A DNA stretch of 64,000 bases from Monocercomonoides exilis PA203 (GCA_001643675.2 LSRY02000002.1:124001-188000); one strand, 5' to 3'. Positions 6,691-45,999 are shown, counted from the first letter of the stretch. Notes: generated from the letters alone by a model not told the origin. A program made the numbers and translations.

Positions 6691-7933
6691 AACAGGCTCC
6701 ACAAGCACGAAATGTGTTTGGGAAAGCAGAAAAGAATGATGAACCGGAAAATAAAGAAAGCAATATGCTGTCTTTGCTTGAAAATCCCATTTTATTGACA
6801 ACTTTCTTTGTTTCATTGAGATGAGAAGGGATTGTAATTCTTGGAATAACATAACCATTCGCCAATTATAATTGCATTTATTTGTTGTATTCAAAAAAAT
6901 TTTTTTGTTTCTATTTCTCATTTTTTTTAACGTTTTCAGTTTGGAATTTTAAGTATCTTGTTGTTGAAAAGATATTTTTCATTTTTTTTGTTCATGATTT
7001 TTGGTTTTTAAAGAGAAATGCATGCAATCATTCACAGACGGCACATGCATATCTCTGTGTGGAATTTGTAGTTTTGCCTATTCAAGCATTTTTTATTTTT
7101 ATTCAGCACCCATTTTCAATCGAGATTTGTGTTTTGTCGATATGTATTCATCTTGTTTTTATTTCATTTTCATTGCATTCACCTGTTGAGAACGTTAGAA
7201 CATGGAGAGGAATTGCTTCAATTCATTTTTGGAGAAATCTTGAGAGTTTCCGTTTTTGTGAAGTGCTTTTGTCAAAGCAATTACTGTTTGAGTGAATATT
7301 TCGTTTTTCCATTCTTCAAGTGCATTTTTATGAGCAAAAACAAAGAACACCCGCAAATGAAGAACACATTTATATTTTTCAATCTTGATGTTTGTTGAAC
7401 AAAAATCAGAAAAAGCAATCCAGAAAAAATGATTGTGGTATAAACTCCTTTTTCATTCCTTTTTATTTGAATCTTTCAGTTGACAAATAAAAAGTCCAAG
7501 GGCTGCTATCTGCCATTCTCTTTGTAACTCCTCAAAGCCCAATTCTCATTCTCTCGAAAAGACCAGCATTGCATCCATTTCGGTTCCCTCGTCTTCCCCC
7601 TCTTTCCCCCTCAATCCCAGTTCATCTTTGCAATATCAAATTCAACCTGTTGCAATTCCTTTTGCACTTCAAAGGAGAACAACAAACATTCTACATTCTC
7701 CAAACAAAACACGTACAAAAAATAGAGAAAGAGGACTTCGAAGCACAAAATTTGTCAAAAAAGAAAATGAAAAGAAAAACACACATTCATCGTGCTTCAG
7801 CCAAATCACACAGCCCAAGCAGCACAGAAGCCCTCCAAATGCTCGTCTTTCTGTCTCTTCCTTGATGCCTCTGGCCATCTCCTCCTCTGTCTCGGTTGAC
7901 TTTTCTTTCCGCTGTCCGCCCTCCCTCTCCTGC

Positions 7934-10860
7934 TCACCTTCCCGGCTTCTTCTCCTTCCGCCCAAGCCCCAGCACAAGCCGCGCAAGCAGCCGCTTCCCA
8001 AACCCCACAAGCTGCTCCCAGATCGTCATCTTCTCCCTCTGCTTCCTCCTCCTCATTTCCTCTGCCTCTGCCTCTGCCTCTGCCTCTGCCTTCCTCCGCC
8101 TCGCCTCCTCCTCTCTCTTCTGCTCCACCACCAGCTGCTCCACCATCTCCCCTCGTCTCCTCCACACCCCTCCATCTGCCCCACACCTCCACGCTCTCTT
8201 CTCCCCTGCCATCTCCTCTTTCCTTCCTTCTCCCCCTGCTTCGAAGTGGTGTTCTGCTGACTCCTCGTGCTGCACTCCCTTCGGTGTCAGCAGACATGCG
8301 CTCTCCTGCATCCTCTGCTCCACCCTTTCTGGGCTTGGCGCCACCCCCGCAAATCCGTTCGTGCGCTCCAGAAACGGGGTGGTCACGCTCCACTCTCTCT
8401 GCACGCCTTCTCCTGAGTCTCTCCTGTTCCTCTCCTCCCCATCCTTAGATCCCTCCAAGCAGCCTTTCGGTTGTTCTTCTTCCTCGTTCAGCAACAGTGA
8501 ATGTGTCTGAGAATCTGGTTGAAGTGATTTGTGTGAATTCGGTGCAGTGGCTGGTGAAATGTCTGGTGAAATGTCTGGCGAGGTGAATGGTGAAGTGTGT
8601 TGATGCCCAGCTGCATCCTGACCGATTCCACCACTTGTGCTCCCCTGTTCTATTTTGTCGGTTGCACCCATATCCTCCTGCCAAGCATGAAGTGTTGTTG
8701 GAGCTGCTCTCGATCCTGCCCCATCGTCTCTTCTGCAATCCATCCTTCTTTCTTTCTCTTTCCCCTCCTTTTTCTCCAAATTCATTTTCCACACCCCAAC
8801 AAATATTTCCTCTGCTCTCCCAACCAGCCTCTCCAGACTGCGCTGCTTCCTCTTGCTCACAAAAATCTCTTTTCCACCCTCTCTTCTCTCCTTCTCCTCC
8901 TCCCCAACACAGACTGACACCCCTGCCAATCCTGCTGCATCTGCTGAAGGCCTCGCAGAAGTGGACGATGAAGAAGCAGATGAAGTTGAAGAAGGCGATA
9001 CAAAAGAAAACGGAGAAGGGAAAGTCACATACGATGTCGAAGAGGATGATGAAGAAGATGAAGTTGATGAAGATGGCAAAGGAGAAACGGATGAAATGGG
9101 TGAAAACAAAGAAGAGAGTGATGATGATGGTGATGACGATGCCTGAGGCATTGGTGTGTCTGCCTCTGCTTCTTTCTCCAGTGACACGTTCTTTGCCAGC
9201 GTCTTCAGCCGGAGCAGGTCTCGCGTGCTCAGCATCTTCGCTCGCATCCCCTGCTGCCCAAGCAGCGCCACCCCAATGCACATCTCAAACGGCGTCCCAA
9301 TCGCAACAACCCGATCCAGCAGCCACACACGCTCACCACAAAAATCAGTTCCCAAACAGCACAAGCAAGAAATAAAGAAAAGAGAAAAAAAAATAAATTG
9401 AAGAAAAATAATTGTTGAAACAAATATTTGTGACAATGCAAAGAAGAAGAGCATTGCCCCTTCCCTCAAAAATACCAACCCACCTGCACCTCCAAAATCA
9501 GCTCTCCAAATGCCCAACCCTCGCAAACCTCGTCCAGCTCCAGCGACCGATAGAACGTCCCCAGCCACTCCCCCGCATACAGCATCCCCGAGAACCCGCA
9601 TTCCCTCAGATGCGCTGCCAGCTCCGGCTCTCCAACACCCAGCACTTCCTCAAACATCTCCACCGCCTTCCCCAGCTCTGCCCCGTCTGCGTGGAAGCAC
9701 CCCCCAAAATAGCCCCGCAGCACATCCCCCAGCACCCGCCCTCCCCGCATCCATCTCGTTCCTGCCTCCAGCTCCTGCTTCCTCACCTTCTCCTTCTCTT
9801 CTTCATTCGACAAGCCACACGCCCCTCTGCCCCGAAGCCCTGCCCACACCACCGCCCCGATCTCCACCATCCCCTGCACATACCCCGGCACCGGCCGCTC
9901 CTCCACCACCCGCCCCACCATCTCCCGCACTGCCTCCACCCCTTCCCCATTCTCTCCTGCAGCCTCCTTCCACCCCACACCCCCAATCCGCCCCAAGTCC
10001 TTCTCCAGCCGCTCCCTGTTCGTTCCGGCTCCCTCTGCCCTCTCTGCCCCTTCCGCCTCTGCCCCCGTGCAGCACAAAGCAGCAAAGAAAGGAACATCAA
10101 AATGCACAAAATAAAGCAAAACAGATTCAAGCCAGTTGTCCACCACATCAAATGCCTCAAAAAAGAAAAAAAAAAAACTAATAATCATTCGAGCACACCT
10201 CCAACCCCAGGCGTCCCATTGTCTGCCCCAAACCGGTCCAGCTGCGCCTCTGCTGCTGCCAGCGCTCCCCACACTTCTCCCCGCAACCCTCCTGGCACTC
10301 CATGCCTCGCCACAGCCACCTTCCGCACCAGGCAAAAACCCACAAAGCATTGCACAACGATGCAGGAGCGGAGGAAAAGGAAGTGAGGCAACGCATCCGA
10401 GATTAAAAAAATGAAAACAAAAAAATTTTTTGAAAGTGAAAGTGAAAGTGAAAACGAAAACGAAAACGAAAAAGGATTTCAGACTCGAAGCTCCTCCAGC
10501 GTGGCTGGAAGCCCCCTCAGCAGTCGTGCAACGGGGTTTTCTTCTAATCTGCCCGACTGCTCAGCTGCAGTTCCCAACGTTGTTGTGTTGCTCGTCCTGC
10601 CCTGTCTTCGCCGAAGTCGATGTGGAGTTTTGTCTCGAAAATCAAACACCCAAAAATTCTCTGTTTTTATGCCGTGATGGCCCACTCTCGTAAAAATATC
10701 GGTTCTTTGTGTTGCGGTGTGCCGCTGCGGTTTCTTCCGCCCCAGAAAGCAGAAAAAGCGGATCTGCGAATTTTGTGTTGATCCTGCCCACACTCGCCTC
10801 CACCCCTCCAAACACAGAAATCTCTCCACATCTGGTGGAGCACCGCAAAAATAAAACATG
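7934..10860 (-). CDS. TBC-domain Rab GTPase-activating protein, multi-exon, with a Ser-rich and coiled-coil C-terminal tail; start codon uncertain
   Basis: TBC motifs are spread across ORF fragments: ELR|VAVARHGVPGGLRGEVW, LEKDLGR (Arg finger), PGYVQGM (Gln finger), EPELAAHLRECG...YAGEWLGTFYRSL, then DE|RVWLLDRVV (intron ~9332-9528). T-rich GT-AG introns separate the fragments. Confidence 0.75.
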
Positions 10861-11082
10861 GAAAAAAAAGCAGGACTTCTGAAGTGGACACTCTGATTCT
10901 TGCCCGAGCACACAGCCAGAAAATTAACAGATAAAAAAAAACAAAAAAACAAAAAATACAAAAAATTCAAAAAACAGAAAAAGAGCAATGACACAAAAAG
11001 CTGTGTGAAAAGGCTGCCGAGCAAATAGAACAGAAAATGAAAAACGAGGAAATTAATAGAATATCTTGCAGCACTCGCCACA

Positions 11083-14000
11083 TCAAACAGGATGTTGGGC
11101 CAGAGGCAAGCAAACAAGCAAATGCATTTTGTCAGAAACAAAAAATAAAAAAATAAACTGCTTCTCTTTTCTTTCCTTCATCCAAGGCGTCTGCTGGCCT
11201 GTCAGGAAGCGCCCCCGAACGAGTTCCACCGCGCCCAGAAGGCGTCTCCAGACTCCACATCCACCATCCGCACTGCCTCCCGGAACTCCCCCCACCGACA
11301 CCGCCGCCACCCCCTGCTTGATCCCCAGCAGCTGCCCCCGCACTGCATCCACCGCCTCCCCGCGCCGCTCTCCCCGCACCCGCCACGCCGCCTCCTTCCC
11401 CTCCGGAAACAGCACCACCAGCAGCCCTAGCGCTGCCCGGAACAGGAACGACGGGTCTCCCCACCGCACCTCCTCCACCACCGCCGACGCAATCTCCACG
11501 CTGAACCGCTTCGCAAACAGCGAAATAAACCACATCCGCACAAAGTCAAACATCAGCTCCTTCCGCTCATACAGCTCCCCAAAGAACCGCAGCGCTGGCT
11601 GCTCACACAGCACAATCACCATCCCCACCACAAAAAAAGAAAGGAAAACAAAAATCAAAATTAAAATTAAAAAAAAAGAGAAAACAAAAGCAGCACACCA
11701 ATTTCGACTTCTTCAGCAGGTAATGCAAGAACCCGTTCATCTGCTGCATAAACGCAGGCGTCAGGCGATACAGCTGAGTGAAGAATGGAGACAGCACAAT
11801 GTTTGTGAACAGTTCATATGCACCAAATTTGTCTCCGAAAAGCGTAACAAGCGCAGCTGGATATGACATACCCTGCAAAAATCCTATTTCTGGGCAACGA
11901 ACAACAAACCTCATTAGCAGCTCTCGAACGTCATCCTTTGAAAAGTCAACTGTATGTCCTCCATCTGCACTTGACACCAAAGTTGTCCGTTTCACATCCA
12001 GCTCAATAGTACGGAATGGCAGTCGAAACATTGAAAGCTCATCGTCACCAATCAATCTTTCATGAAATTTTCTTTCCCCATAATATCTAATATTCTCAGA
12101 TTTTCTCTCCTGCTCAATTCCTTTTTCGCACGATAATCCCATCATGCGCACAGAAGGAAATGCTTTCACAAACGGTTGTAATGGAAGTTCTGCTCTTGTT
12201 ATGTCAAAATCTGGCAGTTGGTTTGCTTTACCGCTTGAATGCATGGAAACTGACAGAATTTCATCATTCCAAGCTTCCCTTGATCCACAAAAATTGTCAT
12301 GAGGTGTTTTCAGTGCAGTTGAAATGGGAGTCAATGCTTTCGCTTCATCTGAATCGCTTTCGTTCAACCATCCAAAAAGTGGAAGCGCTTGACTTTCACT
12401 TTCATTGGTCATATTTAAATTCAATGACTTTGAGTTGAGCGTATCTGTACTTTTGTTCTCTTCAGAGATCTTATCAAGAGATGCTGATGATTGAGTCGAG
12501 TGCTGAAAGTGTCCTTGAATTTTTTCCTCGGATTTAATTTGTCCTTGCGATGTTTGAGCTTCTGCTTCCAATCTTGTTGAATCTTCAAATTCTTCTCGTG
12601 CAAGTATTGATCGGATTTCCCTTGCTTTAGCAAAATCTTCTTCATAATCCTGCCATGTAATTAACATATTCCTTGTCATCTGACGCACCCATCCTGCGAA
12701 TCTCAGCTGAGTCGCAACAAATTTATTCTCTGCAAGCTGTCCTGATGCCCTTCCCTTCCCTCTAAATTGTTTCTCAACATACATATAAGGAATGCTCATT
12801 TCTTCCTCATTCAATAATTCGCATTCTCCGAAGAATTCTTCAGAAGAGCTCTCTCCTCCTCGAGTCGGTGAGATGGAGTGAAGTATTGTCGATGAAGACG
12901 AATTTGAAGGAGAAGAAAGAGTAGCAAATATCGCAGAAGATAAAGATAGATGAACGGGAGAAGCAGAGGCTGAAGCTGATGCTGGATGCATGCTCGATTT
13001 TACTTGTTTGGTGGCTTGAGGCAAAAATGAATTAAATCCAAATGAAAATGAATTGTTTTGTTTGGAATTCGACCCATTACCAGTTTTTTGTGTGAAGGCA
13101 CTTGATGTTTTATTGCAAGTATTGAAAAAAGGAATTATCGAATTAAGCGAATCTGTTTCTGTTTGAGAAGGAGGAGCATCAATCAAATGCGAAGGACTGA
13201 AATATGTGAAAGAGGGTGCTGAAAGAAGGATGGGTGATGTTTTGGCTGAATCTGAGAGGATGAATGGTAGATAAGAAGGGGATTCTCTCAAAGAATCATG
13301 TAAAATTGAGCGGATATCAAACGGAAGGCAAAAATGTGGATAAACACTCAACTGAATCTGAAGAAAATGTGAAAAAACTGGCCAAGTCAAATTCGGAGCC
13401 ACTTTCAACGATCGAATCAATATCCGAGTTGCATTAATGATTGATATTGGTGTTGAAGCATTTGATGGGATATTAACAAGTGGCGGAGTTTGTGTAAAAT
13501 CCGATACTGAGCGAAAAGCAAATGGAGAAGAAATAATATCCTCAATCAGCAATAGTAGTGCTTTGACCATCGAGTAATTCGAGCCATATTGGATCAAAAG
13601 TGACACAAGTCCATTTAAAATCGAAAGTTGGTCAAACATTTGATCCTCAACGGACGAACATGAAATTTTGCCTTTGTTTGATGATATCGTCAGATAGTGA
13701 ATCAAATCAAATGGATGAAGAAGATGAAGAGAAAGCGCAACATCTTCTTGAGTTTCTTCTGTAAAATATCTGAAAAAGAACGATAAAATAACTGTCAACA
13801 AAAAATGAGCGTTTGTGATTGAAGAAAGCGCACAAAGAACAGAAACAGCAGATGATACAACAGATGTCACTTGGCAGCCTAAAAAAGGTAATATAGTTGA
13901 CAGAAATTTTGCTAAGAGATTTGGTGATGGTAGTTCCAGAACAGAAAAATATTCCGATTTTAAGTAGTTGATTCCCTGAGGATTGTTGCAATTTTGTATA

Positions 14001-17000
14001 GCAAGTGCTTTTTGTTCATTGTGCAACTGGATTAACGCAACAATTCGCTCTGCAATCGAAGAAACAGAACTTTTCCGTCTAAATGAAGTAGGTTTTTCGA
14101 AAGAATTTCCCCCTTTTTTGATGCCAAGAATAAAGAGAAAGCTGTCAGAATTGATAACCCCGCACATCAGGATGAAAGCTGTTTCGATTGTCACACTTAG
14201 CAAAGACTGCCATTGCTCAAGTATCATTTGCGTGCATTCTTCTTTCGCAAATCCTTTGATATTTTCGCTATCTGAAGCTGATGAATTTGATGGTATTTTT
14301 TCGGAACTGTTATGAATCGATGAACTTAGTCGCTTGAATTCAGAAAGATGTGGATCAAAAGTCGGATATTCGCTCATAATCGAGAGCAGACGGAGCAAGG
14401 CATCTGCGCAGTTTCTGCTATGCAAAGTTAAAGAGCTTGATGTAATGCTATCTTCAAAGACATCTTCCCTAAATGGAATGAAATTGTGATTTTCCTGGTG
14501 AGATGAACTAACAAGGCAGCAATATGGAATCATCTTCACATATTCGCCAGCCATTAGCAGTGTGTGTTCTTCGAGGCAACAGCGAAGGGAAGCAAAGCAA
14601 TCAGAAAGCGTAAAAAAGCAATCAGAGCAAAATGGACTCTGATTGGAAAGAACAGAAAGCAAAGATAGAGATCGAAGGCAACGAACAGACGCAAACTGAA
14701 TAGCTGGAGAATCAATTCTTTGAAAGTCGAGAAAAAGGTTGCTCTGGTTTGCCAATATAGATTCATTTGTTGAGACGCTTAATGTGTCCTGCTCTTCTTC
14801 TTTTGTGGACTTGCTCAAACATTCAGAACAATCGTGCACAGTACTTATAACCTCTTTGGTTTTACCATCCCTCATATCCTTCACTGTTCCCGTTACAATA
14901 TATAAGCACGCTTTCATTGCTTCGATAGCTATTTCCTCTGCTGTATTGATGATCGCGGGTGAAGTACATGGAGAATGTTCGCATTTAATCCACTTGCATT
15001 GCATTTCTGAACTGAGATCATCAATGACTTCCACTTTTCTGCTTTGATAACTTTGAATCGAATTTAAAAATTCTGAATGATGAAAAGAAGAAGCAGAAAA
15101 GCTTACAACCGGACTTGAAAGAAGAGGGAAGGTTGAAGATTCAATAAAAGCGGATAATCTGCGGAAAATGTTTGGAGAAGAAGAATTCAAAACTTTCATC
15201 GAAAAAGGCGAAGATGAACGCTTTGGAGACATGGAAGAAGGAAGAGGAGATCCACAAAACGACGAAGGAATAGGTGAAAAAGAGCGAAAAGAAGAAGGAG
15301 ACATTGAGGTTACTGGAGAATCTGCCGAATAATCGAAGAAAGAAGGAAGATGATTAATATGTGATGTAGATTTTTGAATGTAGGATATTTTCTGAGAGAG
15401 AGACGGCTTGAGTTGTGCATCTGAATTGTTGGAAATGCTTGCTTCTTTGCATCTGTTCAAAAACGAATGGTGGAAATAAGGGCGTTTTAGTCCATCAAAT
15501 TCCAGCTGAGATGGCTTTATGCAAAATTGATAGCAATCTGATGATTCATTATTCACAAAATACTGTTCGAATTCTTCATTTTCCAGTAAACAACGAGAGC
15601 ATCCTCTACACAGATTGTTGATGTTTGCATTTTCAACATCTTTAAGGTGATGTTCCTTGTTCAGACCAGAAATATATAAATAATCATTGGCAGCGCATTT
15701 TTTCAGCTTATTCCGAATTGCCTCCGCTTGAGACACACGCTTCAAATCTGAGTCACTCAGCCCCAAAATTCCAGTGAGATTTGTATACTCATTGACAGAA
15801 GAAGATGCTGTCTTTGGTGTCTTCAGCTGTTCGCAACGGATTATTGGAGACTTTTCCGGAAGTGGCGTCGATGGCGATGAATGAGCCGACTGGATGTGTG
15901 TGGTTGGGCTTGCTGAATGTGCTGCCCTCGACAGAAAAGAAGTGCTTGAAAATGGCGACAGCGGAGGAGAGGCTGACGAAGCTGGTGCTGGAGAGGTCAT
16001 CTTGGACGGAGAAAGAGGACGTACTGATGGAGAGGAAAGGGGAGTAATGACTGGAGATGGAGACGAATGCAAGGAACCAGAAGAAAGAGAGCTTTGCTGC
16101 GAGGGAGTGCTTGAAATTGGAGAAGACACATGGTACGTTCCCAAATGTGGGGTGTGTGTTTGACTTGATGTCGAAGGCGATGAATGCAGCGAATGTTCGC
16201 TCTGATAGAAAGACATTTGCTGAGCTGTCAGATGGAGAGGTACCAAAGAACTGTGCTCGAATGGGGAAGAGCATTGCCTTTGAACAAAAGACAGAATGTC
16301 ACTCAGAACATTTTCTGTTTGGCTGTTGAGAACACCTGTCTGGCCAAGCAATCTGAGGTACTGTCTTATCAGTCGACTAATTGCAACATTCAACTGAGAG
16401 CTGCTTAAAGATGTGAACTGGCGCAATTGTTCTGAAGAAGCATCGTTTATTTCATCTGAAAGTTGAATCAGCGCAGCTATGGATGCGCAAAGATGACTGG
16501 AGTATTGCTCAACTAGGAAATCGCAGTGAAACGCCTTTAAAACAGAAAGAGCAGAAGATGCAAGCTGTTCGGGTGAGTTTGTGTCTGAAAGCGCAGAAAG
16601 AGCAATAAAGACAACACATGAAGCCAAATGTTGAGCATCCTCTGCTGTTGGCAACACATTTTGTTCTTCAAATAAATTATCATTTGAATGTGCTGAGAAC
16701 AAAGAATTGCTCGCTTGTTCGTGTGGCAGTTGATCGTCATTAGAAGATATTGAAACAGTAGAAACTGAATGAATGGAATCAGAGCTTGCTTGGACTGAAT
16801 CAGAAGATGATGAAGAAGCAGAATACGACTCTGATTTTCCGAGATGATTTTTTGTTGCTTGTGCAGAGTTTGTATCTGATTGAGTCGTTTGCTGGACAGA
16901 AATAGGCATAAACAGATAAGAAGGATTTGGCGTTGAATGAATCAGAGAACGAACTCTCGAAAAGCGAAGCCGAGAAGAAAAGGCAGATTTGAGTTGTGAA

Positions 17001-20000
17001 TGTCCACAAGATGCAATGCACCTGCAAATTAAGTTGTGTGAGAGCAAGAATGCAACCGGGAAAAAAATGGAGTCGTGTGCTTCAGACAGTTCATCAGCAC
17101 GCAATTTAGTAGTCGTTGTGCAGATGTGTTTCTGGATGGAAGGAATATGAATGGAGAATGCAGGATTGTTGAAGAGCAAGGATGTCAATGCGATTAAGGC
17201 CTCATTGGCAGTTTTGTGGCAGATAACAACAGTTGGAACAAAATGATGAAAATGAGCATGCGCTGTATTGTTTGTTGCAGTTGCAGATGATGTTTGGAAT
17301 GAAGATTGAGATTGTGTTTGTTGAAACAAAAGATCGCTTTTTGAAAGAATAAGCGGTAATGTTAATTCCTCAGAAAATTTAGTATTTGTAGATTGAGTTT
17401 GTTGCTGAGCGTCAACTGGAAGAGGTTGTGAAGGAGAATGAGTAATGGTGGAAAGTGCAAGATTAAAAGGCCCTGCTTTAGCTGTCCATTGGTCTGCTGA
17501 GTCTGGAAGAGGAGGTGTTGCAAGAGAAAAGAGAAGTGTGACAAGAGGTGCAATGAACTGTGACTGGATAAACGGAGAAAGAAGTGTCACCGCTCTGCAA
17601 GCTCTCCACATCAAAAGATGATTTCCAGAAAGAAGAATCTTCAGACACAAAGTTATGAAACTTGTAAGAAATAGAGAAGATCGCTCTGAGCTTTGAATGC
17701 TTTGTTTGACTTCATTGCACTTATTCTCTTTCGGACTTTGTTGCTGTTCAAACGGAGTCGAATTCAAAAGAGATTCAAATGGTGGCTTTCCAAATGGTTC
17801 ATCCAGCTCGCGGAAAACAAAAGATGCAAGTGATTGTTTGTTTGTCCCGTTCGTCAACGGAATTAGCACAGAAGACGAAAGGAAAGGGAACTCGTCAGGA
17901 AGATCAGCTAAGTTGGAGGGAGGTGGTGCTGTGGGTGGTGCTGTGGGTGGTGTAGTGTCACTCAAAATGTGGTCGAGGACTATCTTTGTAAGCGAAGTGA
18001 AGGCGATAACCTGCGACGAAATTTGGCAGAAGGCATCAGAATTGTGTGGAGGCATTTCCAACGGAAATGGAGTAGATTTGCCTTCGAAGGGAACTTTTAG
18101 TGCGATTCTCTCAAAAAATGAAGTGCACTCAAAAGAAGAGGCCATATCTTCACAGAAAAAAAATAAGGCCGAAGAAGAATCTGGTTGAGACTGTGATTTG
18201 TTAGGAAGTTGAAGCGAATCATCAGAAAGTGGGATAGATTGTTCAGAAGAAAAAACAGATAATTTGAAGTGTGTGATGCGATGGAGTGAATTTGGCAGTT
18301 GTGAAGCAGTGTTGTTTGAAACGGGCTGATACGAGCTTATTTCATTTTCCGAAGAATGCAAGAACTTTGAAGTCTCTTTTCCAATAACATTTTGTTTCGC
18401 AGCTGGTGCGTGGAATTGGGGGTTTTCAGTTGGATTTTCGTTTTGTGCCTTTTCCTTTACTTTTCTCCTTAGAAATCTGCTCTTTTCGTTCTTGTCTTTT
18501 TTTGGCATGGATGTGCGAGTGCTGGATGTGATGTACAAGCAATCGCTTGTCCCAAAACTTTGAGAAGAAAAGGCCCCAACAGCAGAGGAATCGCCAATCG
18601 GAAGAGAAGACACGCGATCTTTTTCCAGCGGCTGAAAAAGAACCACTCGAGAAAGCGAGCGGAAGAGCTCTGTTTTGATTGAGATATGCTCCTTTCCACA
18701 AAGTGAGGCGAGCAAAGAGAGAGAAAAAGGAGAAGGTTTCGAAGGTAGTAAAGTGCGAAGAAGCGAATCTGTTTGCTGAGAAATTGCGGGCAAAGAAATA
18801 AGCCTGCTGAAAACAGAAGATGCGACTGTTGAGAGCAAAGGATGATGGCCAATTAGAAGAATCAGAAATATGACCAACAGCGGAGAAGAAGACGAAAGTT
18901 CAATCAGCGATGAAAAGAAAGTGATTATGACAGGAAAATGCTCGTTGCTGTTCCACTTGTCTCTTATGGATGCTATTTTTGAGTCGAACAATGCGATGGG
19001 AGAGAAATCTGGCGAAGACATGCTAAAAACTGGTGTCACACCAAAATTCCCTTCTCCAAAAGTTTCTGTTTTCTGCCTTGCTGATGGCGACGAAGGATGA
19101 GAAGAATGAGGCTCCTTGTCGTTCTTTCCAAATGTTGAAAACGAATGTTCCTGGCTTTGTCTCATGGTCTGCATTCGAAGTGCCTGCGATTTATCAGAAG
19201 TCTGTTGCGCTGCTCTTTGAGATGACTTGGTATTTTTTGAGGCATCTGCTTCACTCAGAAAGCGAGCATAGTGCCCAAACAGCAAAAGCTGCTCGCTCAC
19301 ATCTAGTTTGTCTGTCCGAAATTCTTCGTCGTCTTCATCGAACGATGAAGGATCCTCTTTGGGCTTCTCTTTTGAGCTGCTTTTGGCAGATCTGATCCAA
19401 TTCATCAGCGAGCTCGACTTCTTTTCGTGCTGTGCAGATTTGTTTGATTCGCTCGACGAAAAAACGCAATCAAAAGTTGTTGACTGAGCAAAAGGATACA
19501 TCTGTGCTAAGTCCAACGCTGTTGGTGTTAATAATTCTTGATTGAAAAAGTCTGGCTCAAAATATCTTTGTGTTAGTGAGCTTGGAACAGATGAATTTGC
19601 CTCTGGAACTTTGTTGTGTTTCGAAGAAGTTGAGCGTCGCTTTTTCTTCTCATTTAAATATTCGCAGTAACTTTTCATCTTCATTTTCAGTGAATGTATC
19701 TGGCTGATCCGATTGAGATGCTCGTTTTGCAGTTCTTTCAGCAGAACATCCAACGCTGCCTTCATCACAGAGGCGCTCCAGCGAGGCAGGATGTTGTCAA
19801 TCACACTGTTTTCGCTCCATTCTGTCAGCCGTCTGAAATCGCTCAAAACAGCTCGACGCAAATCAGATATTGGATGGAGCATTGTTTCAATTATCCCAAA
19901 TTTGTTGATTCTGTTCTGAATGCGCTCAGCCAGCTCTTCAAATGGATTGCGAGCAACCTGCCTGGCAGATGCGATGTCCAAACACAAAGAGAACAAAGAC

Positions 20001-23000
20001 GATGGAGAATGTGTTGATAGTGCATTGCTTTGTTGAGCCTGGATTGGTTGTTTTGCTAAGTTTCCTGAAGAAGAGTAATTTTTCCTGCGATTTTCATTGT
20101 TGTGCAAATTTTGCTCACGAGTCTGCAGCTTGGACAAAGATTGGGATTCAGATATCGTCGAATTCGGCTGATTTTGTGAAAAAACTGTTGGAAGAATAGT
20201 TTCTGTGTGGATAGATCGTTTGATAAACATTGTAGTGAATCTGACAATAGAGTCAGAAGGCAGCAGATAAAGAGAGTGAATAAGAGAAGGAGAAACGAAT
20301 GGATTGCACCACTGATTGAATGACTTGAAATAAGAAGTGAAAAGAAAAGCATGATTGAAAGCAGAAAGGAGCTGCGATTTCTGTTGGGACAAGTCAGGTT
20401 TGTTGAAGTTTAGTGAATGCAGCTGATTCGATGCATCAGAAGAAGACACTGCAGAAGACTGATTTTTGGAAGAGCGAGTGGTTTTTGCTATGAATTGGAG
20501 AGCGTGCCTGTAGAACTGTCTGGCTTCATAAATTGCATTGAAAAATTCTTGAAAGGCAAAATGAGCAAAGCGATATAAGATCGGAGGATGGAGTGTTTGA
20601 TAAAGAAGATCAAAGAAAGACGGTACATGCAACTCCTGGTCAGACGAAGATGAATCCAAAAACGAATGTTCAGCAAAATTCTGAGGAGCATCCTGGAGTG
20701 ATGGCTCGTGTGTTGAGGAATGAGACGAGGCTGATTCGTTTGAATGGGCAGATGGCACATGAAAACTGCGAGTGAACTGCGGAGTAGCAGAAGAGATTGG
20801 TTCACTCAATTGAAAATCGAGAGAGTGGGGAGATGACTGAAGAGCAGCTGGAGCAAGTGGAGGAAGTATGCACAACTGCTTTGTGAACGTTTCCAGAAAG
20901 GGAACAGGAATGGCGAATGCTTCTTCGTCTGTTGTTTGCGACACCTGTGAGAGCGGAGTGCCCATCGAAAAATGAATAGGATCTTGTTGCATCGGCTCGG
21001 CTTGCTTTGCATCGCAATCTTTCTCGCCTGATATTTGTGTGATTGTGTTCCGAAGTGGGGAAGGTATTGTTTCTTCTGCTCCAATTGAATAATGTTTTGT
21101 TCTTTCAGTAGGCATTCTGATGTTCTGCTCTGAGAAATATGAAGTAGGTGCTGATGACCCACATCTGCACTTCTGTGCCTCTTCATCATCTTCGTGAGAT
21201 GTTTGCACTTCATCTGAAATGTGTGTTGAGGACTCTGAAAAGAATGTTGCTGATTTGCTTGATTGTGTTTGTGGCTGAACGACAGAATCTTCTGTTTCTG
21301 TGTTTCCTTTCTGTGTAGCCGTTCCTTCATCTGATGTGTCGTCAGAATCAATCCCCAAAAGATTTCTCAATGCTTTTTCTTCAGCACTTTCAAGTGTATC
21401 TGGTGACGAAGCAGTCTTCAACATTTGCTGTTTGGAGGATAAAAGCATTTCATTTTGCGATCTTGTTTTCTTCAAATGATGCTTTTTCTTGGTGATTTTT
21501 CTGAAAGACCTTTTCTTCAAGCCATGTTCTAAGCTGTCTCGAACGTTCGCCTCATTTGCGAGGATGTCCAGCAATTCTGAAAAGGTACCTTCTTCGCTGC
21601 TGCAGCTGCTGTCGTTTTCAATGCTTTCTGTTGCCTTCTCTTCGACACACTCGCTGCGATAGAAGACTTCAATCGGAGAAGGAGGATCAGATGCTGCCTC
21701 GAAATAAGTCACAGCTGGCATGTAAAAAGTATCTGAAATTGAGCGAAGTTGATCAAATAGAGCAAAATTGTAATTTTTTGTAATTTCAGTATCTTCCTCT
21801 CTCACACATCCGTACGTGAAATCCTGCTTTTTTTGAGTGTTGCCATCTTTTCCAAATTCCTCACTTTTCTTTTGCTTGTCTTTCATCTCTTGCTCTAATA
21901 TCTTCATATCTTTTTCTATTTCAATTTTTTTATTGTCTTCCTTTTCTTTATCGCATTTGCAGACATTGTCTTTCCCTTCCTTTTCTTTTGTTTGTTCTTT
22001 GATGTTGTCTGCATCGCCGTTTTCAGTCTTTTCAAAATGGTTTTTAACTTCATCTTCGTTTTCAGAATTGACAGTTAATTTCTTTTTCGTTTTGTTCCTA
22101 TTGCTTGTTGAAATGGCCTCTTTTTGTTCGGAGCATGAATACGAAGAAAACTGTTCTTTGTAGTACTTCACTATTGCCAGCTCTCCTGCTTCAGCCTCAG
22201 ATTTGTCTGTAAACGATGCAAATGTCACTGCTGAAACTGGAGGAATCATCAGAGAAATATTCAGCGGAAGATACTTTCTCTTCCACCATTTGCTGTCCAG
22301 CTGTTCCAGTGTTTGTGCTTCTGGTGGAACAAAAGAAAGCAGAGAAGGAGATTTAAAGTGGTTGCTTATCAGCTCTTTTGCAGTCAGCGGTAAAGGAGAA
22401 GACGCTGCCTCAGCCACAAACGAGGAAATAGACGAACTCAGCTCGATTGTTGGCTTCGCCTTTCCTTCATTTGAAAAGCTAAATGTTGATCCAATCGGAG
22501 ATTTCAGTGCTTCTCCGTTGCTTTTTTCAGAATCCAGCTGCTTTGGCAGTGGGATGCCGCTCAAATCGGGTGAATGTGGAGAAGTTTCGCTTGCTGCAAC
22601 AGAAACATCCAGCGACGGAGAGAGCAGAGGCGAATGCATCGGAGTCGAAGGAGATGTTGCTGTCTGGCTGCAGCTGGAATGAGTCCGAGAAAAATCTGTA
22701 GAAGGAAGCACTTCGACTGGAACCCATCTGACAAGGAGAGAAAATGGCGTGTCCATCTGCCCATTCAGCTGGCACCACGCTCTCATCAGATAAAGCGAGG
22801 AGCAGCACTCAGACACAACCATCTCGGCGTCGATGTCGATTCTGTTTGCTTCCATCAGGCGATGCGCCAAGCGGCAGAGAAGCTCTACTTTGGGGTCGTT
22901 TGACAGAATGAGAGCGAAAAAGATGCGGCTGAAGAGCGAAGATGCAAAGGAAGACAAAGAGAAGGCTGAAGAAGGGTGTGGAAGAGCAGACAAAGAAGGC

Positions 23001-26000
23001 ATATCGCTGCTGCCTTCGTCATTGGCATCGATTTCGTTGGATTTGTGTTCTGTGGTTGAAGTGGATGATGAAGTGGCATCTTGAGATGAATGTCGCTCGT
23101 GAAATGAAGATGGCTGAGGTGGAGATGAAGGAAGTTGCGAAGTGTCAGCAATTATTGTGGAAGAAGAAGATGATGATGATGAAGCAGAAGCGGAAGTGGA
23201 AGAATGTTGCATATCATTTGCAGCACTTGTGATTGCATTTCCAGATCCAAAAGAAGGCAAAAGAGAAGAACTCGACTTGGAATGTGTAAAAGCAGCAAGC
23301 ACATGTGATTTTTTAGAATGGGCACATGATTTGTTGAGATGTGATTGAGAAAAAGACGCAAAGGGAATTTTGATGTTTGGAAGAAGAACAGAAAGAGATG
23401 ACATGTCACTCTGAGGAAAGAATATGGTGTGTCCTGCTTTGAAATGAGGAAAGCGGTCAGAAGATGTGTCTGTGGGTGGGAGCGTAGTGAAATGTTGTGA
23501 AGTGAGCTGAGCTGTTGGTGTGATGCCATAGAGACAGGAATGAAGTGCGATAAGGAAAAGAAGACGAGAGCTGAATCGGAGCGGCAAATGGTGCCAGTTC
23601 AGAGGCGGCTTGGAAAGCGCATTGGCAACTTCAAACAGAGCAGCAGACACTAATGAAGAGGAAGGAAGAAGATTGGCAGAAGCAACAGAAGAATCTGGTG
23701 TGTCTGACGAGAACGGTTGAGGCATCACTGAAATGTTTGGCGCAAACGACTCAGACAAAACAGGCAGGCGGAAACGAGAGAAAGATTGGGCAAGCGAACA
23801 CAGAAAAAGAGGATAGCGCGAAAATGAGGAAACAAATGGATCTTTCAGAAGCGTGTCGGTGAGATAAAGAGCTCCTGGATCGCAATCAGAAACATCGCAG
23901 CTGTTTGAATTGCTGTCAAATGACTCGTTTTCCATTTCGCTCATCGCTTTTTCCAAACTCCACCGAAAATCCTTCAGCCCAGCCGCCATTTCGATGCGAG
24001 TGGCAAGCAGAGCCCTGGATTGGCACGATGTAAGTGGGGAAAGCGTAGCAGTTGAATAGAGCGGAACGATCGAATGAGAAAAAAACAGAAAAAGCGAGAC
24101 AGGAAGGATGCCTTGGGCAGGCTGTGAGTTGCTCTCTTCGGTCACACTGGTCTCGTCTGAGGCTGTTTTCTCAGACATTCCCTGTTCTGAAAAGGCCTCA
24201 TTTTCTGTGTGAAGAGAAGGCACAGAACTTTCGTGTTGTGATTGCTCATCTTGAATAGCTTGCTGTTGAATGTGTTTGAGAACACTTTGAGGTCGTTGGA
24301 TGGAAAGAGTGTTCGCAAAGCTTGGCTTATCGAAAATGTGGAAAGGAAGAGGCGACGGGTGGAAATGTGCAAAAGAGGAGTTGTTCTCAAAAGAGCCTGC
24401 TGAATTGCTTTTCTTCTGGTCTGCTTCTTCCTGTGATTTTGTCAGCGTGTGTCGAATTTCATCAATCAGAGTGTCTTCCTCGGCATTCGCCAATTTAGCG
24501 TTTTTGCTCTTCCGAGACTGCGTTTTCGAATAAGCAAAAGAATCAAGATGTTGACTCCAGGATGTATGCCTCCTTCTTCTTTTTCCATCTTTCTTTCGAA
24601 AATGATGCGGGTCAAGTTGAACTTCTTTTTTAGCGCTTGAGACATTCGATGCTGTATTGCCTTTTTGAGAGTCGGAAAAATTGTTGTCAGTCGAATCACC
24701 GTTTTCGCTTGAGACGAAATGAGCAGCTGTTGCTTCTCTCTGTTTCTCAATCCATCTGCCTTCTCCTCTCTCTCCTTTGGTAAACTGTGACGAGCGCAGC
24801 AAAGACGTCATGTCTGAGGAGCGAATGGCAACAATACATCGAGTTTGAAGCAGAAGAAGCGGAGAAGATAAAAAACGGCACATAAAGAGAAGATTTGAAA
24901 GGGATGGAAATGAAGGTGGGGGCAACGAAGAAAACTGAGAATATAACTGCTCTGATATAATTGAATGTTGCAGATGTGCATCGTTTTCTTGAGAAGATTC
25001 TTCATATGAATGTTCTGTCATGTCAGTAGAGTCAACTGTTTGGCTTTCTTCGCTGGACGTTTCAGAAAAAAAGTCATCAAGTGGCTTATCGCCTTCGTCT
25101 TTGGATTGTACGCTTTCATCGTCATTTGAAAAGGATTGTAAACTTGGATAATTGCGAGGTATTGAGCTGAGCAAAGAAAACATTGAAAAGACAGAAGGAC
25201 ATAAATCAATAAACAACAAGCATCGTCCAGCATATAGCTGCGAAAGAAGATATGTTTTCTGTTCTTTAATTGATTGTGTAGATGATCGCTTTGACGGAGA
25301 TGTATCTATTAATTCAGGCAGAGCAGCATTGCTAGATAAAATAAGCTGCTCCAATCCAACCATATTAGAAAGCAAAAGCTTTGCAGAATTATGATTAATT
25401 GATAAATAAATCGGAGTGAGATCCCATCTTTTATCTATATTTTGAGATTTATTGTGATTTTTTGTGAGGTTATACAAGTATTGAGCTGCATTCCAACATA
25501 ATCGTCGAAGTGCCCATGTTTTCCCTGATGATTCGTTTCCGCATACAATTAATCGTTGAGGAAAATTGGGATTTGAAAGTTCTTCATAATTAAAAAAAAT
25601 CTGCTTTCTATGAAAAGATTAAAATTTTAAACTATTAAAAATACCAGTATTCAAACTTTTCAAAGTGTTGCTGATGCTTAATATCATATCTACACGAATT
25701 TGCACTGAATTTTCGTTTGCTCAAGAAATTATGCAACGAAAGAAAAGATGATGGTGATTCGAATTGGGCCTGTTTTAGAGCATCAGTTGCTTGCGTCATT
25801 TCTGGACCTATACATATTGAATCTCCAAAAATAATCGGTGGAATCATTAAACATTTAGTGTTTGATATTTCCGCATGGAATAAACTATCATATTGATGGC
25901 TATATGTCAAAATGCATTTTTTTAGATAAATCAAATGATGTTCTTTGAAATTTTCTTGATTCCATTAGACAGTTTCAATACACAAAGAAAAAATAATACA

Positions 26001-26098
26001 TAAATAAAATATATAATTATCAAGCATTTTATAACTGTACAACATGAAAAAAACATACGACAATAATTCATATGAACAAATGAAGGGAGGCCCAACAT
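11083..26098 (-). CDS. Giant (~4,900 aa) NACHT/STAND NTPase - helical repeat - TBC Rab-GAP fusion protein
   Basis: Exons 26098-26059, 25954-25657, 25607-11699 and 11598-11083 join in frame across GT-AG introns. NACHT motifs: Walker A RLIVCGNESSGKT (GNESSGKT at 25517-25540), PIYLSI, Walker B GRCLLFID (~25205-25230), sensor-1-like CIVAIRS, YPLFL, and winged-helix YRFAHFAFQEFFNA (~20530-20578). TBC motifs: IELDVKRT, GFLQGM, KL|PALRFF, MWFISLFAKRF, FLFRAALGLL. The extreme 5' and 3' exons are less certain. Confidence 0.8.
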
Positions 26099-27306
26099 AA
26101 TTTTAATATTCTTCAAAATGTGTGAAATTTGTAAATTTTCTTCAATTATTGTTGTGGTTATTTTATCAGTTTGTCTTTTAGTCAGTTGATTAAATCTTTA
26201 TTCATATTCATTGAAACAACAACTTTTTTTAAACTAGTTTTGGTGTGATAGCAAGCTGAAAATATCAAAAATTCCTTTTTTAATCATGAAAAAAAAAATA
26301 TGTAATGCATCTCAATGCTTTTTTTGCATCTGCACAATAATGAATTATGATGAACATTTTTTTTTTTTTTTTTGTTAATTTTTTATTTATTTATTAACAT
26401 ATTTAAGTTTTTTTTTTTATTTAACATTCAATAGAATTTTTATTTTGGAAGAAATATTTTGCTTTTTGAATATTGTTCCACTCAATAATATTTCATATTA
26501 TTTCTCAATTTTTATTTATTTTTTTTATTATTAGGCATGGGAAAGTTAGACTTATTTTGATAAGGTTGAAGAAAAAGTTTTGAATAAATCGTTATTTTTT
26601 TCTTAAATGCAAGAATTTTGCATCATTTGACAAATTAAAAATTAATTCAATTTCTTTTTATTACCATACAAATATAGATGTTTGATTGAATGCTAATTTT
26701 ATTTTCCATATTTGCATACCAAACTAATTACAAACAGTTGTTGAACAAATCACTTTAAAAACAACGTTAACTTCTTTTTCGTTGAATTTCAACTGAAAGG
26801 AAATATTTGAAGTTTTGAAACGTTTTCCAAATATTATCATTTAGAATGATTTTTTTTTTTCAATACAAATAATTTAGAACTTGTGTTTCAAAAATTTTGA
26901 TATTTCAAGAAAATTCAATTTTCAAAAAAATTTGAACTTGCATCAAAAACGAAATTTCTTTCAAAGGTGTGCAATCGTTCTGTTTTTAAGTATAAGCCAA
27001 TTACATAAAGTCATGAAAAAATGAACGAAATTCAAATTTTCTTATTTCCATTAAGTCACTCAAACTCTTTCATTAATCGCAAACAAAGCAAAAACACCTC
27101 CCTCTTTTGTAAAGAATCAAAATAAAAATGAAATAAGCTTTGATACATATCAATAAATATCACAGAAATAGTAAAACGCAAGAAAAAATTGCGCACCGAA
27201 ATTAACAATATAACAACTAAATTGAGAGATAGATAAATAAAAAGTTAACAGGTGCACATTCTTTTTGAAATGAAGACAAAAAATAACATAATGATCGCGA
27301 AAATGC

Positions 27307-30300
27307 TCACTGGTCAAAATCAATATTGTAGTAACCATTTATAGATAAAAGAGGTAAAAATGGCTTCTTTCTCTTTTTCTCAACAAAACGAGAAATTAAT
27401 GAAAGAGTACCAACTAAAACTAAAAATATAATCACAAAAGACAATAAAATTCCAATAGATATCCAACCCCATTCTTTCTTCTCTTTTTCTGAAAGGATAT
27501 TTAGTAAATCAATGCGGATAGCGTTTGACCAGTGAATTCCATCTCCAGTGACATAGCAATACACACTATCAGGTGGCAATTTTGGAAACTCGCTCAAAAT
27601 AATTTCTTTTCCAATAGAATATACAAACGCTTCTTCTGGTTCAAGTTCTGCAGATCTTTTTGCTTCACATTCGACAAATTGTATTGCTTCGCTGAGTTTT
27701 TCGCCTACGCTGCTAGAGTTATTGCCACTTTGCTTTTGATAATAAATCTGAGATGGGCAAGTATCTTTGTTATGAAATTGAGGGGTAGAATGATATTTCC
27801 GAAAATTACTTTGCATGATGAGCTCGAGCGAATCAGGATCAGTCGGAAGAATTTGTGTGGATGAAGTGGAAAAAGCAAAAAGCGGTCGTGTGATTTGCAA
27901 CGTTTCTATTTGAAACTTTAAGCTTGATATATGTGGATAATTGTTAATATTTGCTGCAATTGAGCCACTAGCCAAAATAGGAGTTTTGTTTGGTTTAAAG
28001 CATTCGACAGAAGTTCCTTTAAAAGATTCACATTGCTGATCGCATGAATAATACGAAACATGCGTTCCTTCATTACTTTTGTCGTCAATAAATCTATTAT
28101 TTTTTGAAAGAGATAGATTTGACTTAAAGCATTCGATATTTAGCGGCGATGAAAATGAATCATCAAGTTCAATGACATTCTGATTGAACATGTTGTGTGA
28201 AAGACTGGCAGACACTCCTCTCAATGCTGAAAATCCCCCTCCGATATTCATCTTGAATGTTGATTCTTCTATTACTGTGTTGCTTGGATTATCTCCATCC
28301 AAAGACGATGGTGATCTTAAGTCGAGTGATTCAGTAAACCCTCCACCACCAGCTAATCCATGAATTGTGTCATGCATTGACCCGAAACATTTATTGTTCA
28401 AAAATTCGCATCGATATATTAAAATAGAAGGATTATCTTTTTCATTATTTTCTCGAGTTAATTGTTTTGCTGAACTCGCATGAACGTACATTCCACCACC
28501 AATTCCAAATGCTTGATTATCTTTAAATGAGCAATGCTGCATTTGGAGATAAAAACCTTCTTGATAATTTGAAATATTTCCACTAACTATTTTTTCGTTA
28601 ATTCCTGAAAAGAAAATGCCTCCGCCAGTAAAATGTGAAACGCATTCAGAAACAGTCAGGTTCAGCGCATGTAGAGCCGTGATATATTGTTGTGAACACA
28701 AATATAAACCTCCTCCATAAAAAGCACCGCATTGAGAAATTTTTACATCCGTCAAATTCACAGCAAGCATTGAATATGTACTTGGTTCATTTACAAACCA
28801 AATAGTTTTATCCGAAATTTTTTCCTTTTGCAAAATATTAATTGCTCCTCCACTTCCAGCAGTGCATCTCTCAAATACGCAATTTTGTGTAATATTGATA
28901 GATGTTACTTTTTTATCAACTTTGTCATTCAGATTTATTGAAATAGCTCCTCCATTTATCCCAGCAAAACAATCAGAAAAAGAGCACGAAAAAAATAGCG
29001 CTGAATCCAATTCAGAACCTGTTAATAAGAACACGCCACCTGAGCCTTCGCAAGAACAATCATTTGCAGTCAGTTGTGCAACGTTCACTTTCTGCGCACC
29101 AAAAATCGCAAAAGCACCTCCATTGCCGTTTGATCTCGTTTTTGAAATTAATACATTTCGGAAGAGTGCTTCACGCATTCCCACAATTGTAAACAAGCCT
29201 CCTGATGTTCCCCCTCCACTTGGTGAAACTAACTGTGGCTGCTGATGATGATGTCCAAGCTCTTCGGAGTCGAAATACCAGCCATTGTCGTAAGAAATAG
29301 AAGTCGAACCTGAGGCTGTATGAAATTGGGCAGGATGAATATTTTCTCCTGTGCTTTCAGTAAGCATAAATGTTAGTTCTTTGTTACGATCACCTTGTAC
29401 GAAAAGAGCTGATTCGCAAAAAGAGTTTGGTTGAATTGTAACATTGAAAAAATTCATATTTGTTAGAAATACTGACTGCATGCTAAGAAATAGTGCGACA
29501 ATGCCTTCGATATTTGAAGCTTCAAAATAATCGATATTTAATTTCCCATTTATATCTGCTGCAAAGAAGTTTGCTGTTTCTCTTGAATCCAATTCGTGTT
29601 GAAGGTTAATTTTTGCAGGTGCAAAAGATGAATATTTCGGAACAATAAAATGTTTGTCCTTTTCATCTTCAGAAACAATGTGTTCAAACAGCATTTGATT
29701 GTCCATAAAAGAAATCTCTGAAAATGCAGCATCGCCACCAACATGAGAAATCCATAAATCTGCAAATATTCTTCTGTCTTTCAGCAGTGAATCTGAATTT
29801 ATGGAACTGTTTAACATCTTTTCCTGCTTAATTTCACCTTTTTTCTTGCTTTTATCTGACAAACAGCAATTATGTTCAAATTCATCATTTAAATTGTAAA
29901 ATGCGCAATCAACAAATTTATTCTTTTTGAAAGTCAATTTTGCTCCAATTAATTTCTGAATAATATTTGTAATTGTAACAGAGCAACCGCATCCGCGAGT
30001 ACCTTCTCCAGAATTTTGATCTGGATGGATATTTGCATTACTTGCGAAGCAATCTGCTAAAATATTATTCTCGAATGAGCAACCTGAAATAGAACAAAGT
30101 TTCACGCTATCGATATTAACTGCCATCGAATATAGTTGATTAAACGTGCAAGTATCGATATTGCAAGTCGAGGAACCATAAATGTTGATAGCACTTGAAT
30201 GATAAGCAATTTCGTCTTCAATCAATCTTTCGCGAATCTCTGTCGAAGTTAACTTCAGTTTGGCTTTGTTTTTTTCTTTGTGAATAAATGTATCAGAGCG

Positions 30301-45528: not shown

Positions 45529-45999
45529 GCAAAAAGAAAACAAAACATTCTCAATGTTGACTCCATATTTGTTTCTTTCAAAGAATTTTTTGAAAGAAAT
45601 TGATTGTAAAAAGAAACAGGAAATAGATGGAAAATGAGGTTAGTTGATGAAGAAAAATTGAGAATACAAAAATCGATAAATAAAGAATAAAAGAGAAAGA
45701 AGAGAAATAGGGGTTAGAGGAAGAAGAAGAATAGGAGAAGAAGAATACGATAAGGATAATGCAAATATCAATGAAGAACATGGAAAGGCTTCGCTATCAA
45801 CTCCCTCAGCTACGCCATCGTCTGCAGAAACTGCACCACTCATTGCCCATCCTCAAGAGAAAGACCAAAGAAGGTTGCTTTTTTGAGTTGCTCCTTCACA
45901 GCTTCAGCCCCAACAGCACTCCCGGAAGCCGCACAATGTGGAACAAATTCAACCGCCCTTCTTTCTTCTCTTTCACCAACTGTACAATCTAAACATGCA

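Follow-up and report, generated by a model that had tools for sequence, protein, structure and literature searches.

Can a nucleotide-driven switch of the NACHT type be joined to a Rab GTPase-activating protein (RabGAP) in a single polypeptide? This question is raised by a long minus-strand gene in the window—the whole 64,000-nt stretch of the Monocercomonoides exilis PA203 genome that we analyzed (GCA_001643675.2, LSRY02000002.1:124001-188000, hereafter contig C14:124001-188000). Coordinates are window positions unless a contig is named. M. exilis is a gut flagellate without mitochondria. STAND/NACHT switches drive death domains, nucleases, proteases, and similar outputs, while the TBC domains of RabGAPs are normally regulated by other, simpler modules. 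We know of no case in which NACHT-type switches and RabGAPs are joined, and, to our knowledge, there is almost no experimental cell biology in the Metamonada. A preliminary description, made from the sequence alone, had placed between positions 26098 and 11083 an NLR-like NACHT nucleoside triphosphatase (NTPase) fused to a C-terminal TBC domain. After the analyses reported here, we favor, as a reasonably likely account, a NACHT-like STAND switch that is restricted to oxymonads and is coupled to a RabGAP in one gene. A single chain carrying both would link two well-studied systems.

Does one gene span the whole distance from the NTPase to the TBC domain? The open reading frame scan detected an uninterrupted minus-strand frame of 4,671 codons, at positions 11606-25618. 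Since this frame is covered in its 5′ part by RNA contigs and has a collinear paralog, we conclude that one expressed M. exilis gene spans the NTPase to the TBC domain. Our three-exon model comprises 14,613 coding bases and 4,871 residues (Table 1). The RNA contigs, which come from four libraries of one study and were compared with the window at 21500-27300 only, tile positions 21619-25852 and contain no joint other than intron 1. Among them, X1 and X3 cover 25657-25852 and are joined onward to 25607. Removal of intron 1 restores the reading frame (...HFEK to KQIFF) and thereby connects the ATG exon with the Walker A exon. The ATG is the first in-frame ATG of the exon 1 frame, and a peptide resembling the exon 1 product is present upstream of the paralog.

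This structure bears on both ends of the gene as the preliminary description had drawn them. The Walker A motif had been read upstream of the start of the long frame; it indeed precedes the earliest in-frame ATG there, yet it is transcribed and spliced in frame to the upstream ATG exon. The gene start proposed at 26098, on the other hand, has to be moved to the ATG at 25847: the interval 25619-26098 has stops in that frame, no RNA contig coverage was found beyond 25852, and no contig lies over 25962-27125. At the other end, the long frame runs into F/C-rich nonsense after ...LLKKSKL; the inferred intron 2 connects it with another frame, in which the TBC profile carries on. The paralog likewise contains an intron at this codon, and its last exon resembles the one inferred here. 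The stop codon of this inferred last exon coincides with the 3′ end given earlier, 11083.

The public annotation of this gene differs from our model. The sole database protein that matches the gene in a word-indexed search is EukProt MONOS_7912, with 4,550 residues. Its start codon is an out-of-frame ATG among the codons of the P-loop, and its splicing bypasses Walker A (25380-25520); the RNA contigs are continuous across the first intron that it proposes. Its 3′ end falls inside the TBC domain, at 11771, near the boundary of a duplication described below. The gene also illustrates how a domain can escape all standard annotation when it is interrupted by inserts of hundreds of residues; here, the public model drops the P-loop entirely.

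Next, we investigated how widely the gene is distributed. A genome-wide profile search (82.3 Mb, 101 contigs) revealed exactly one paralog, at C13:244147-259107, with a frame of 4,987 codons. BLASTP aligns the two proteins in eight blocks, which are collinear and extend from the P-loop to the TBC domain, and the layout is the same over the full length; the S/K/E-rich stretches between the blocks have no BLASTP match. The only protein that word-indexed homologue searches with the N- and C-terminal regions returned was the public model of the gene itself. When 1.84 billion representatives were searched exhaustively with an HMMER profile, the gene itself and two short metagenome proteins were recovered. 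The latter are encoded on L007 (2,625 bp) and L008 (1,275 bp), contigs of the Joint Genome Institute metagenome 3300042605, which have 26.6% G+C and are interrupted by introns; both proteins are homologous to the NTPase module and contain N-rich inserts. Their source is probably another oxymonad in the gut sample. Both carry G-G-E-G-M-G-K-T, [LI]-T-P-I-Y, L-F-V-D-I-x-P-S-F-F-S, and a [LI]-[VI]-S-[LF]-R-[FS] strand. Because these homologues keep the P-loop, Walker B, and sensor-1 motifs, the family is, judged from its sequences, real and under selection, and it is so far known just from oxymonad-like organisms. A further metagenome scan with the Walker B/sensor-1 alignment yielded 599 pattern matches, none of which was confirmed.

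What identifies the C-terminal domain as a RabGAP? First, exon 2 matches Pfam RabGAP-TBC (PF00566) at profile positions 47-147 with 31.9 bits, above the cut-off of 25.2, and exon 3 adds a further 15.8-16.1 bits at profile positions 163-209. The paralog scores 32.1 bits, and the TBC domains of the two paralogs are 44% identical. Second, the fingers I-E-L-D-V-K-R and F-L-Q-G-M align to I-K-L-D-I-S-R and Y-V-Q-G-M of TBC1D14, with Phe in place of Tyr in Y-x-Q, and the Arg and Gln fingers are both kept in the paralog. The domain therefore bears both of the catalytic fingers that the preliminary description had ascribed to it, and it looks catalytically competent by its residues. It also lies where it had been placed, at the far C-terminus of a protein that has no N-terminal effector domain. 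As compared to the TBC RabGAPs, among which TBC1D14 (2qq8) is the closest solved chain, the I-x-x-D-x-x-R and x-x-Q-G-M fingers are shared, but the window domain has diverged strongly (E 0.005 to TBC1D14), its match leaves out the first 46 profile positions, and it ends a chain of 4,871 residues. About 20 TBC loci were found in the genome, and just the window gene and its paralog lie in frames of more than 4,600 codons.

What kind of NTPase does the N-terminal module represent? Each of the eight strings in the motif series quoted in the preliminary description is found a single time, and all of them follow the order given there within one stop-free minus-strand frame. About 80 residues lie ahead of the Walker A motif, which has the form G-x4-G-K-[ST] and reads G-N-E-S-S-G-K-T here and G-M-D-G-V-G-K-T or G-G-E-G-M-G-K-T in the homologues. 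The candidate sensor-1 segment, predicted as a beta strand in the AlphaFold2 (AF2) model, is conserved within the family as I-V-A-I-R-S, I-V-T-A-R-S, or [LI]-[VI]-S-[LF]-R-[FS]. The module is interrupted by four inserts, of about 100, 230, 230, and 700 residues, and the longest lies inside the putative winged helix. Between sensor 1 and residue 1706, the paralogs share just three conserved islands.

The order of these elements is that of the NACHT NTPases (PF05729), which include animal, fungal, and bacterial NLR-type proteins: the P-loop, the [LI]-T-P-I-Y beta-2, the Walker B Asp, and the candidate [ST/I]-R strand come first, and L-x-P-L, the ‘NPL’ helix, the winged-helix helix, and F-x-H-x-x-F-Q-E-[FY] come later. 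In contrast to the NACHT proteins, the window protein has inserts of 100-700 residues between and within its modules and a C-terminal TBC domain, while it lacks an N-terminal effector and, according to Pfam, LRR, WD40, or TPR repeats.

In order to place the module among related families, we compared alignments with alignments by local hhalign. The reference members were taken from five bacterial genomes, reached through a 16S pattern search, and comprised 10 NACHT (Pfam E 1e-11 to 1e-31), 12 NB-ARC, 9 AAA_16, 4 classical AAA, and 2 DnaA sequences; each set was aligned over a segment that starts 25 residues ahead of the P-loop and ends about 480 residues beyond it (300-330 in the AAA and DnaA sets). 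A five-row family alignment of the nucleotide-binding domain served as the query. The NACHT alignment was matched with a probability of 95.9% and a score of 68.7 over 96 columns, from the P-loop through beta-2 to Walker B. The matches to the other families cover the P-loop only: classical AAA reached 86.9% (score 46.8, 28 columns), NB-ARC 73.0% (43.5, 27 columns), DnaA 46.5% (35.9, 19 columns), and AAA_16 30.3% (35.3, 25 columns). On the same scale, the NACHT and NB-ARC alignments score 83.4 against each other.

The three paralog-conserved islands were each compared separately with the NACHT alignment. The island at residues 505-616 maps to NACHT columns 195-227, which contain the ‘L-A-x-N-P-L-M’ helix (score 24.2, E 0.014), and the Pro of its ‘NPL’ motif is retained in the paralog. 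The island at residues 876-980 maps to columns 261-285, ‘L-L-Q-R-L-A-Y-W-L’ (18.8, E 0.065), and that at residues 1651-1725 to columns 336-351, ‘F-x-H-R-T-F-Q-D-Y-L’ (21.7, E 0.015). In the latter, the motif Y-R-F-A-H-F-A-F-Q-E-F-F is aligned to NACHT F-V-H-R-T-F-Q-D-Y-L. All three islands follow the order of the NACHT template and outscore each of 28 control blocks, which were other conserved parts of the protein in forward and reversed direction (mean 12.5, standard deviation 2.1, maximum 17.3). None of the three islands rises above noise when compared with NB-ARC, classical AAA, or DnaA; with AAA_16, one of them scores 20.3, at a comparable position. Moreover, in a blind scan of the whole protein by 100-residue windows, 12 of the 13 best windows are the collinear motif windows, the outlier lying in the TBC domain; the His/QE island is the best window outside the P-loop (E 0.003). 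In this manner, the putative nucleotide-binding domain, helical domain, and winged helix, searched as separate pieces, map in order and collinearly onto one NACHT alignment.

The case for a NACHT-like module is thus built on four points: the alignment beyond the P-loop, the collinearity, the match to the only conserved islands, and the specificity for NACHT. These comparisons support the placement of the NTPase nearer to NACHT than to NB-ARC, AAA_16, classical AAA, or DnaA. Our reading, from sequence comparison, is that the module is a NACHT-like STAND, although not a demonstrable member of PF05729. Language-model neighbors, which we treat as a lead only, are NACHT, NPHP3_N, and nSTAND3 clusters (0.93, 164 shared features).

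A considerable body of results weighs against this assignment. The Pfam search for NACHT that had been advised in the preliminary description gave no match over threshold: the window protein does not match PF05729 (threshold 26.7 bits) at E up to 10, a genome-wide six-frame scan found no NACHT match over the Pfam cut-off, and the HMMER search of 1.84 billion proteins returned no NACHT protein. PADLOC reported nothing useful, and a sequence profile search of the PDB returned generic P-loops only (E >0.19). The Walker B consensus of the family, F-[IV]-D-[IL]-x-P-S-[FV]-F-S, is not the NACHT D-[GAS]-x-D-E, which reads D-G-[ILV]-D-E in the bacterial references; the paralog has Asn at the winged-helix His; and inserts of the size found here are unprecedented for NACHT. 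Among the hhalign results, the sensor-1 island alone has no match to NACHT, the island matches are individually weak (E 0.003-0.07), and scans of unrelated dyneins, of about 57 windows each, produce about one score of 20-23 per scan. Dynein P-loop windows score 47-58 against the NACHT alignment, so the high probability of the nucleotide-binding domain is partly generic. In addition, the AF2 model is poor outside the core, with a predicted local distance difference test (pLDDT) score below 50 in the HD1 region, and its structure matches point to AAA+/STAND folds in general, with tied Z values. For the gene as a whole, the RNA evidence is confined to the 5′ part, and the 3′ intron and the 3′ two thirds rest on sequence. 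The preliminary NACHT identity thus survives in part: NACHT is the closest of the five families and the islands are collinear with it, but the module stays below every curated threshold and lacks the Walker B signature.

Could the N-terminal module instead be a generic AAA+ or ORC/Cdc6-like ATPase, or another P-loop fold, with NACHT resemblances that arose by chance? We regard this as unlikely, although it is the alternative that holds up best. All of the sub-threshold Pfam matches belong to AAA+/STAND families, namely ORC-CDC6-like, NACHT, NB-ARC, nSTAND3/5/6, and iSTAND. Those of the window protein are led by ORC-CDC6-like (0.008), iSTAND (0.04), and nSTAND5 (0.048), and those of the paralog by ORC-CDC6-like (3.5e-5) and NACHT (0.0045; 17.3 bits, P-loop only), followed by NB-ARC and nSTAND3. 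The ORC-CDC6-like match (PF24389) is the best single Pfam match and also the longest single alignment to the paralog's nucleotide-binding domain, spanning residues 25-235, and ORC/Cdc6 proteins likewise have a winged helix after the ATPase. The structure search points in the same direction. The AF2 model of residues 5-640, computed from six alignment rows, has a mean pLDDT of 45.8 and a strand-helix core at 60-79, and VIA-align of this core gave Z values of 5.4-7.0 to TnsC, Pex1/6, Cdc6/Orc1, and DnaA, all tied with NLRP3, NLRP9, NLRP2, NLRP1, NOD2, and Avs5; Foldseek found no match to the N-terminal model below E 0.07. The weak E-values of the islands and the dynein noise matches of similar size also fit a chance resemblance. 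However, the ORC/Cdc6 score of 23.2 lies below its cut-off of 27, the ‘NPL’ and His/QE islands are NACHT features, and only NACHT aligns beyond the P-loop among the five families compared, which do not include an ORC/Cdc6 alignment. Furthermore, the three islands that beat the 28 controls stand in the correct order and are the sole paralog-conserved islands of that region. If the NACHT assignment is nevertheless wrong, an otherwise ordinary, though very large, lineage-specific RabGAP with an unclassified P-loop remains.

Four other giant frames that the NACHT model had touched, at C91:81785, C11:40150, C10:191744, and C30:83893, were discarded as NACHT-like candidates. These frames of 4,423-9,622 codons contain several tandem P-loops of the dynein heavy-chain type and were touched by the model at the P-loop only. 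A genome scan with PF24389 gave a sole match, P-loop-sized and below the cut-off, at the dynein-like C30 locus.

Does the NTPase still bind nucleotide? A degenerate pseudo-enzyme—an ‘inactive STAND’ serving as a structural piece of a giant scaffold RabGAP—would explain why no second acidic Walker B residue occurs in any of the four homologues, and it would suit the atypical P-loop, the weak iSTAND match, and the loss of the winged-helix His in the paralog. Nevertheless, the window gene, the paralog, and the metagenome homologues all retain G-x4-G-K-T, the Walker B Asp, and the [ST/I]-R strand amid inserts that vary freely. We take this as an argument for selection on nucleotide binding, and we consider a wholly degenerate module rather improbable. 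The NACHT-like switch that we favor would probably bind nucleotide and hydrolyze it slowly or not at all, since its Walker B lacks the second acidic residue.

How might such a switch act on the distant RabGAP? The approximately 2,700 residues following the NTPase are plausibly an alpha-solenoid scaffold. This central region contains four paralog-conserved blocks at residues 1875-4113, the best of which is 3641-4113 (BLASTP, E 9e-43). Pfam detected nothing in the region. Its language-model neighbors are the HEAT-type solenoids HEATR5A, listerin, Tra1, and PSME4, and the AF2 model of the best-conserved block is entirely helical, with a pLDDT of 45. Because two diverged paralogs share this layout of switch, scaffold, and an enzyme whose catalytic residues are intact, we propose a nucleotide-gated or nucleotide-positioned RabGAP, in the following manner. 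The N-terminal module would act as a nucleotide-bound conformational or oligomerization switch, and the switch may position or gate the C-terminal RabGAP on endolysosomal or phagosomal membranes. The nucleotide binding, the switching, the GAP activity, and the target Rabs are all inferred. An unusually large Rab7 set and expanded endolysosomal factors have been reported for M. exilis (PMC6759080), which makes late-endosomal or phagosomal Rabs reasonable candidates for the targets.

A bolder version, in which oxymonads possess a true NACHT-clade STAND switch whose output is the direct inactivation of a Rab GTPase, seems doubtful to us. Here a conformational change or oligomerization, triggered by ligand or nucleotide, would activate the RabGAP and thereby decide phagosome or endosome fate in this bacteria-eating flagellate. 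If it is true, the protein would represent a STAND output not described before, together with an NLR-like protein in Metamonada.

In the favored arrangement, the gene is a new domain combination of known kinds. The preliminary description knew of no NACHT-TBC architecture, and our full-text literature searches (NACHT with TBC domain, STAND NTPase with RabGAP) likewise found none described; the M. exilis genome paper mentions TBC only as a TBC-F expansion. By analogy, and with no homology claimed, ROCO proteins, LRRK2 among them, also combine a nucleotide switch and a Rab-system enzyme in one chain on a very large scaffold. The switch of LRRK2, however, is the Ras-like ROC-COR of unrelated fold, and its output is a kinase rather than a GAP.

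Could the protein be an immune NLR in which the TBC domain serves as an integrated decoy for Rab-targeting microbial effectors? The C-terminal ‘sensor’ position of the TBC domain and the bacteria-rich gut habitat of M. exilis would suit such a role. Against it, the genome holds two copies only rather than an expanded variable family, there is no N-terminal effector domain, and Pfam finds none of the LRR, WD40, or TPR repeats that could form a sensor, so that the features by which NLR immune receptors are recognized are missing. A decoy would also have no need of the two catalytic fingers, both of which are conserved in both paralogs. We find no support for an immune or decoy reading and consider it highly improbable.

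Finally, that Walker A and the TBC domain belong to separate proteins through an internal promoter, unannotated introns, or an assembly artefact is the least credible alternative, to which we give hardly any weight: the RNA comparison ends at 21500, an inverted duplication of 97% identity has its end at 11821, within the sequence that encodes the TBC domain, and the public model is truncated near that boundary, but the 14-kb frame has no stop, and the breakpoint is bridged at 44% identity by the alignment with the paralog, which lies on a different contig and has the same last exon.

Table 1. Positions of the gene and its features in the window, in the order of transcription; all lie on the minus strand.
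Feature	Position	Strand	Evidence or remark
Exon 1	25657-25847	(-)	ATG 25845-25847; 63 codons + 2 nt; RNA contigs X1, X3
Intron 1	25608-25656	(-)	49 nt; GT..AG on the gene strand, CT..AC on the + strand (RNA contigs); joint 25607-25657 in two RNA runs
Exon 2	11699-25607	(-)	13,909 nt, no stop; open frame and RNA contigs over the 5′ part; NTPase, inserts, helical region, first half of TBC
Walker A / P-loop RLIVCGNESSGKT (G-N-E-S-S-G-K-T)	25517-25555	(-)	Sub-threshold P-loop matches; hhalign to NACHT P-loop
PIYLSI	25397-25414	(-)	String match
Walker B GRCLLFID	25205-25228	(-)	hhalign onto NACHT Walker B Asp; second acidic residue absent
Candidate sensor-1 strand CIVAIRS (IVAIRS)	24818-24838	(-)	Kept in paralog and two metagenome homologues
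Candidate HD1 island, L-x-P-L-T and YPLFL	23771-24106	(-)	Conserved with paralog (E 3e-11) and with L007
YPLFL	23801-23815	(-)	String match; NACHT-like ‘NPL’ motif
Candidate first winged-helix helices, island ELLCRLAHRLME	22724-22942	(-)	hhalign to NACHT columns 261-285, score 18.8
Candidate winged-helix His/QE island with YRFAHFAFQEFF	20501-20620	(-)	50% identity to paralog over 40 residues
YRFAHFAFQEFF	20540-20575	(-)	String match
Long region with four paralog-conserved blocks	13280-19996	(-)	Collinear BLAST blocks; all-alpha prediction (HEAT/ARM-like lead)
RabGAP-TBC domain	11416-12016	(-)	Split by inferred intron 2; PF00566
IELDVKRT, Arg finger	11984-12007	(-)	String match
FLQGM, Gln finger	11867-11881	(-)	String match
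Intron 2	11599-11698	(-)	100 nt, GT..AG, phase 0; inferred from sequence and TBC profile continuity
Exon 3	11083-11598	(-)	171 codons + stop (coding 11598-11086); second half of TBC, G/R/A-rich tail
Stop codon	11083-11085	(-)	End of inferred last exon

The 3′ part of the gene lies within an inverted segmental duplication of at least 5.9 kb and 97.3% identity, which relates window 5906-11821 to C14:193100-199000, about 57 kb away. Its boundary at 11821 is inside the TBC-coding part of exon 2; of that exon, the far copy retains just the final 41 codons, followed by the intron, exon 3, and the sequence onward. The paralog can be aligned through this boundary, which identifies the copy in the window as the intact one. 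After the TBC domain, exon 3 (11200-11500) has 67-77% G+C and encodes a G/R/A/V-rich tail, as compared to a gene average of about 40%; the last exon of the paralog, unlike this tail, is AT-rich.

A second TBC-like frame of 364 codons is located at 9469-10560 on the minus strand, 520 bp downstream of the stop codon. It scores 25.9 bits against RabGAP-TBC (cut-off 25.2) and contains L-E-K-D-L-G-R and Y-V-Q-G-M. This frame is G+C-rich, with G/R/E-rich stretches, and lies inside the duplication, with a twin at C14:194897-195391. It may be either a separate gene or further exons.

Upstream of the gene, the neighboring minus-strand gene at 27310-30552 (1,081 codons) matches a right-handed beta-helix (PF13229, 26.4 bits). 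At the start of the window, positions 1-6000 have about 51% G+C, a very strong G-over-C skew of +0.55 on the plus strand, and a 2,220-codon frame without a Pfam match, and a mirror-image C-rich stretch is present at 44000-48000.

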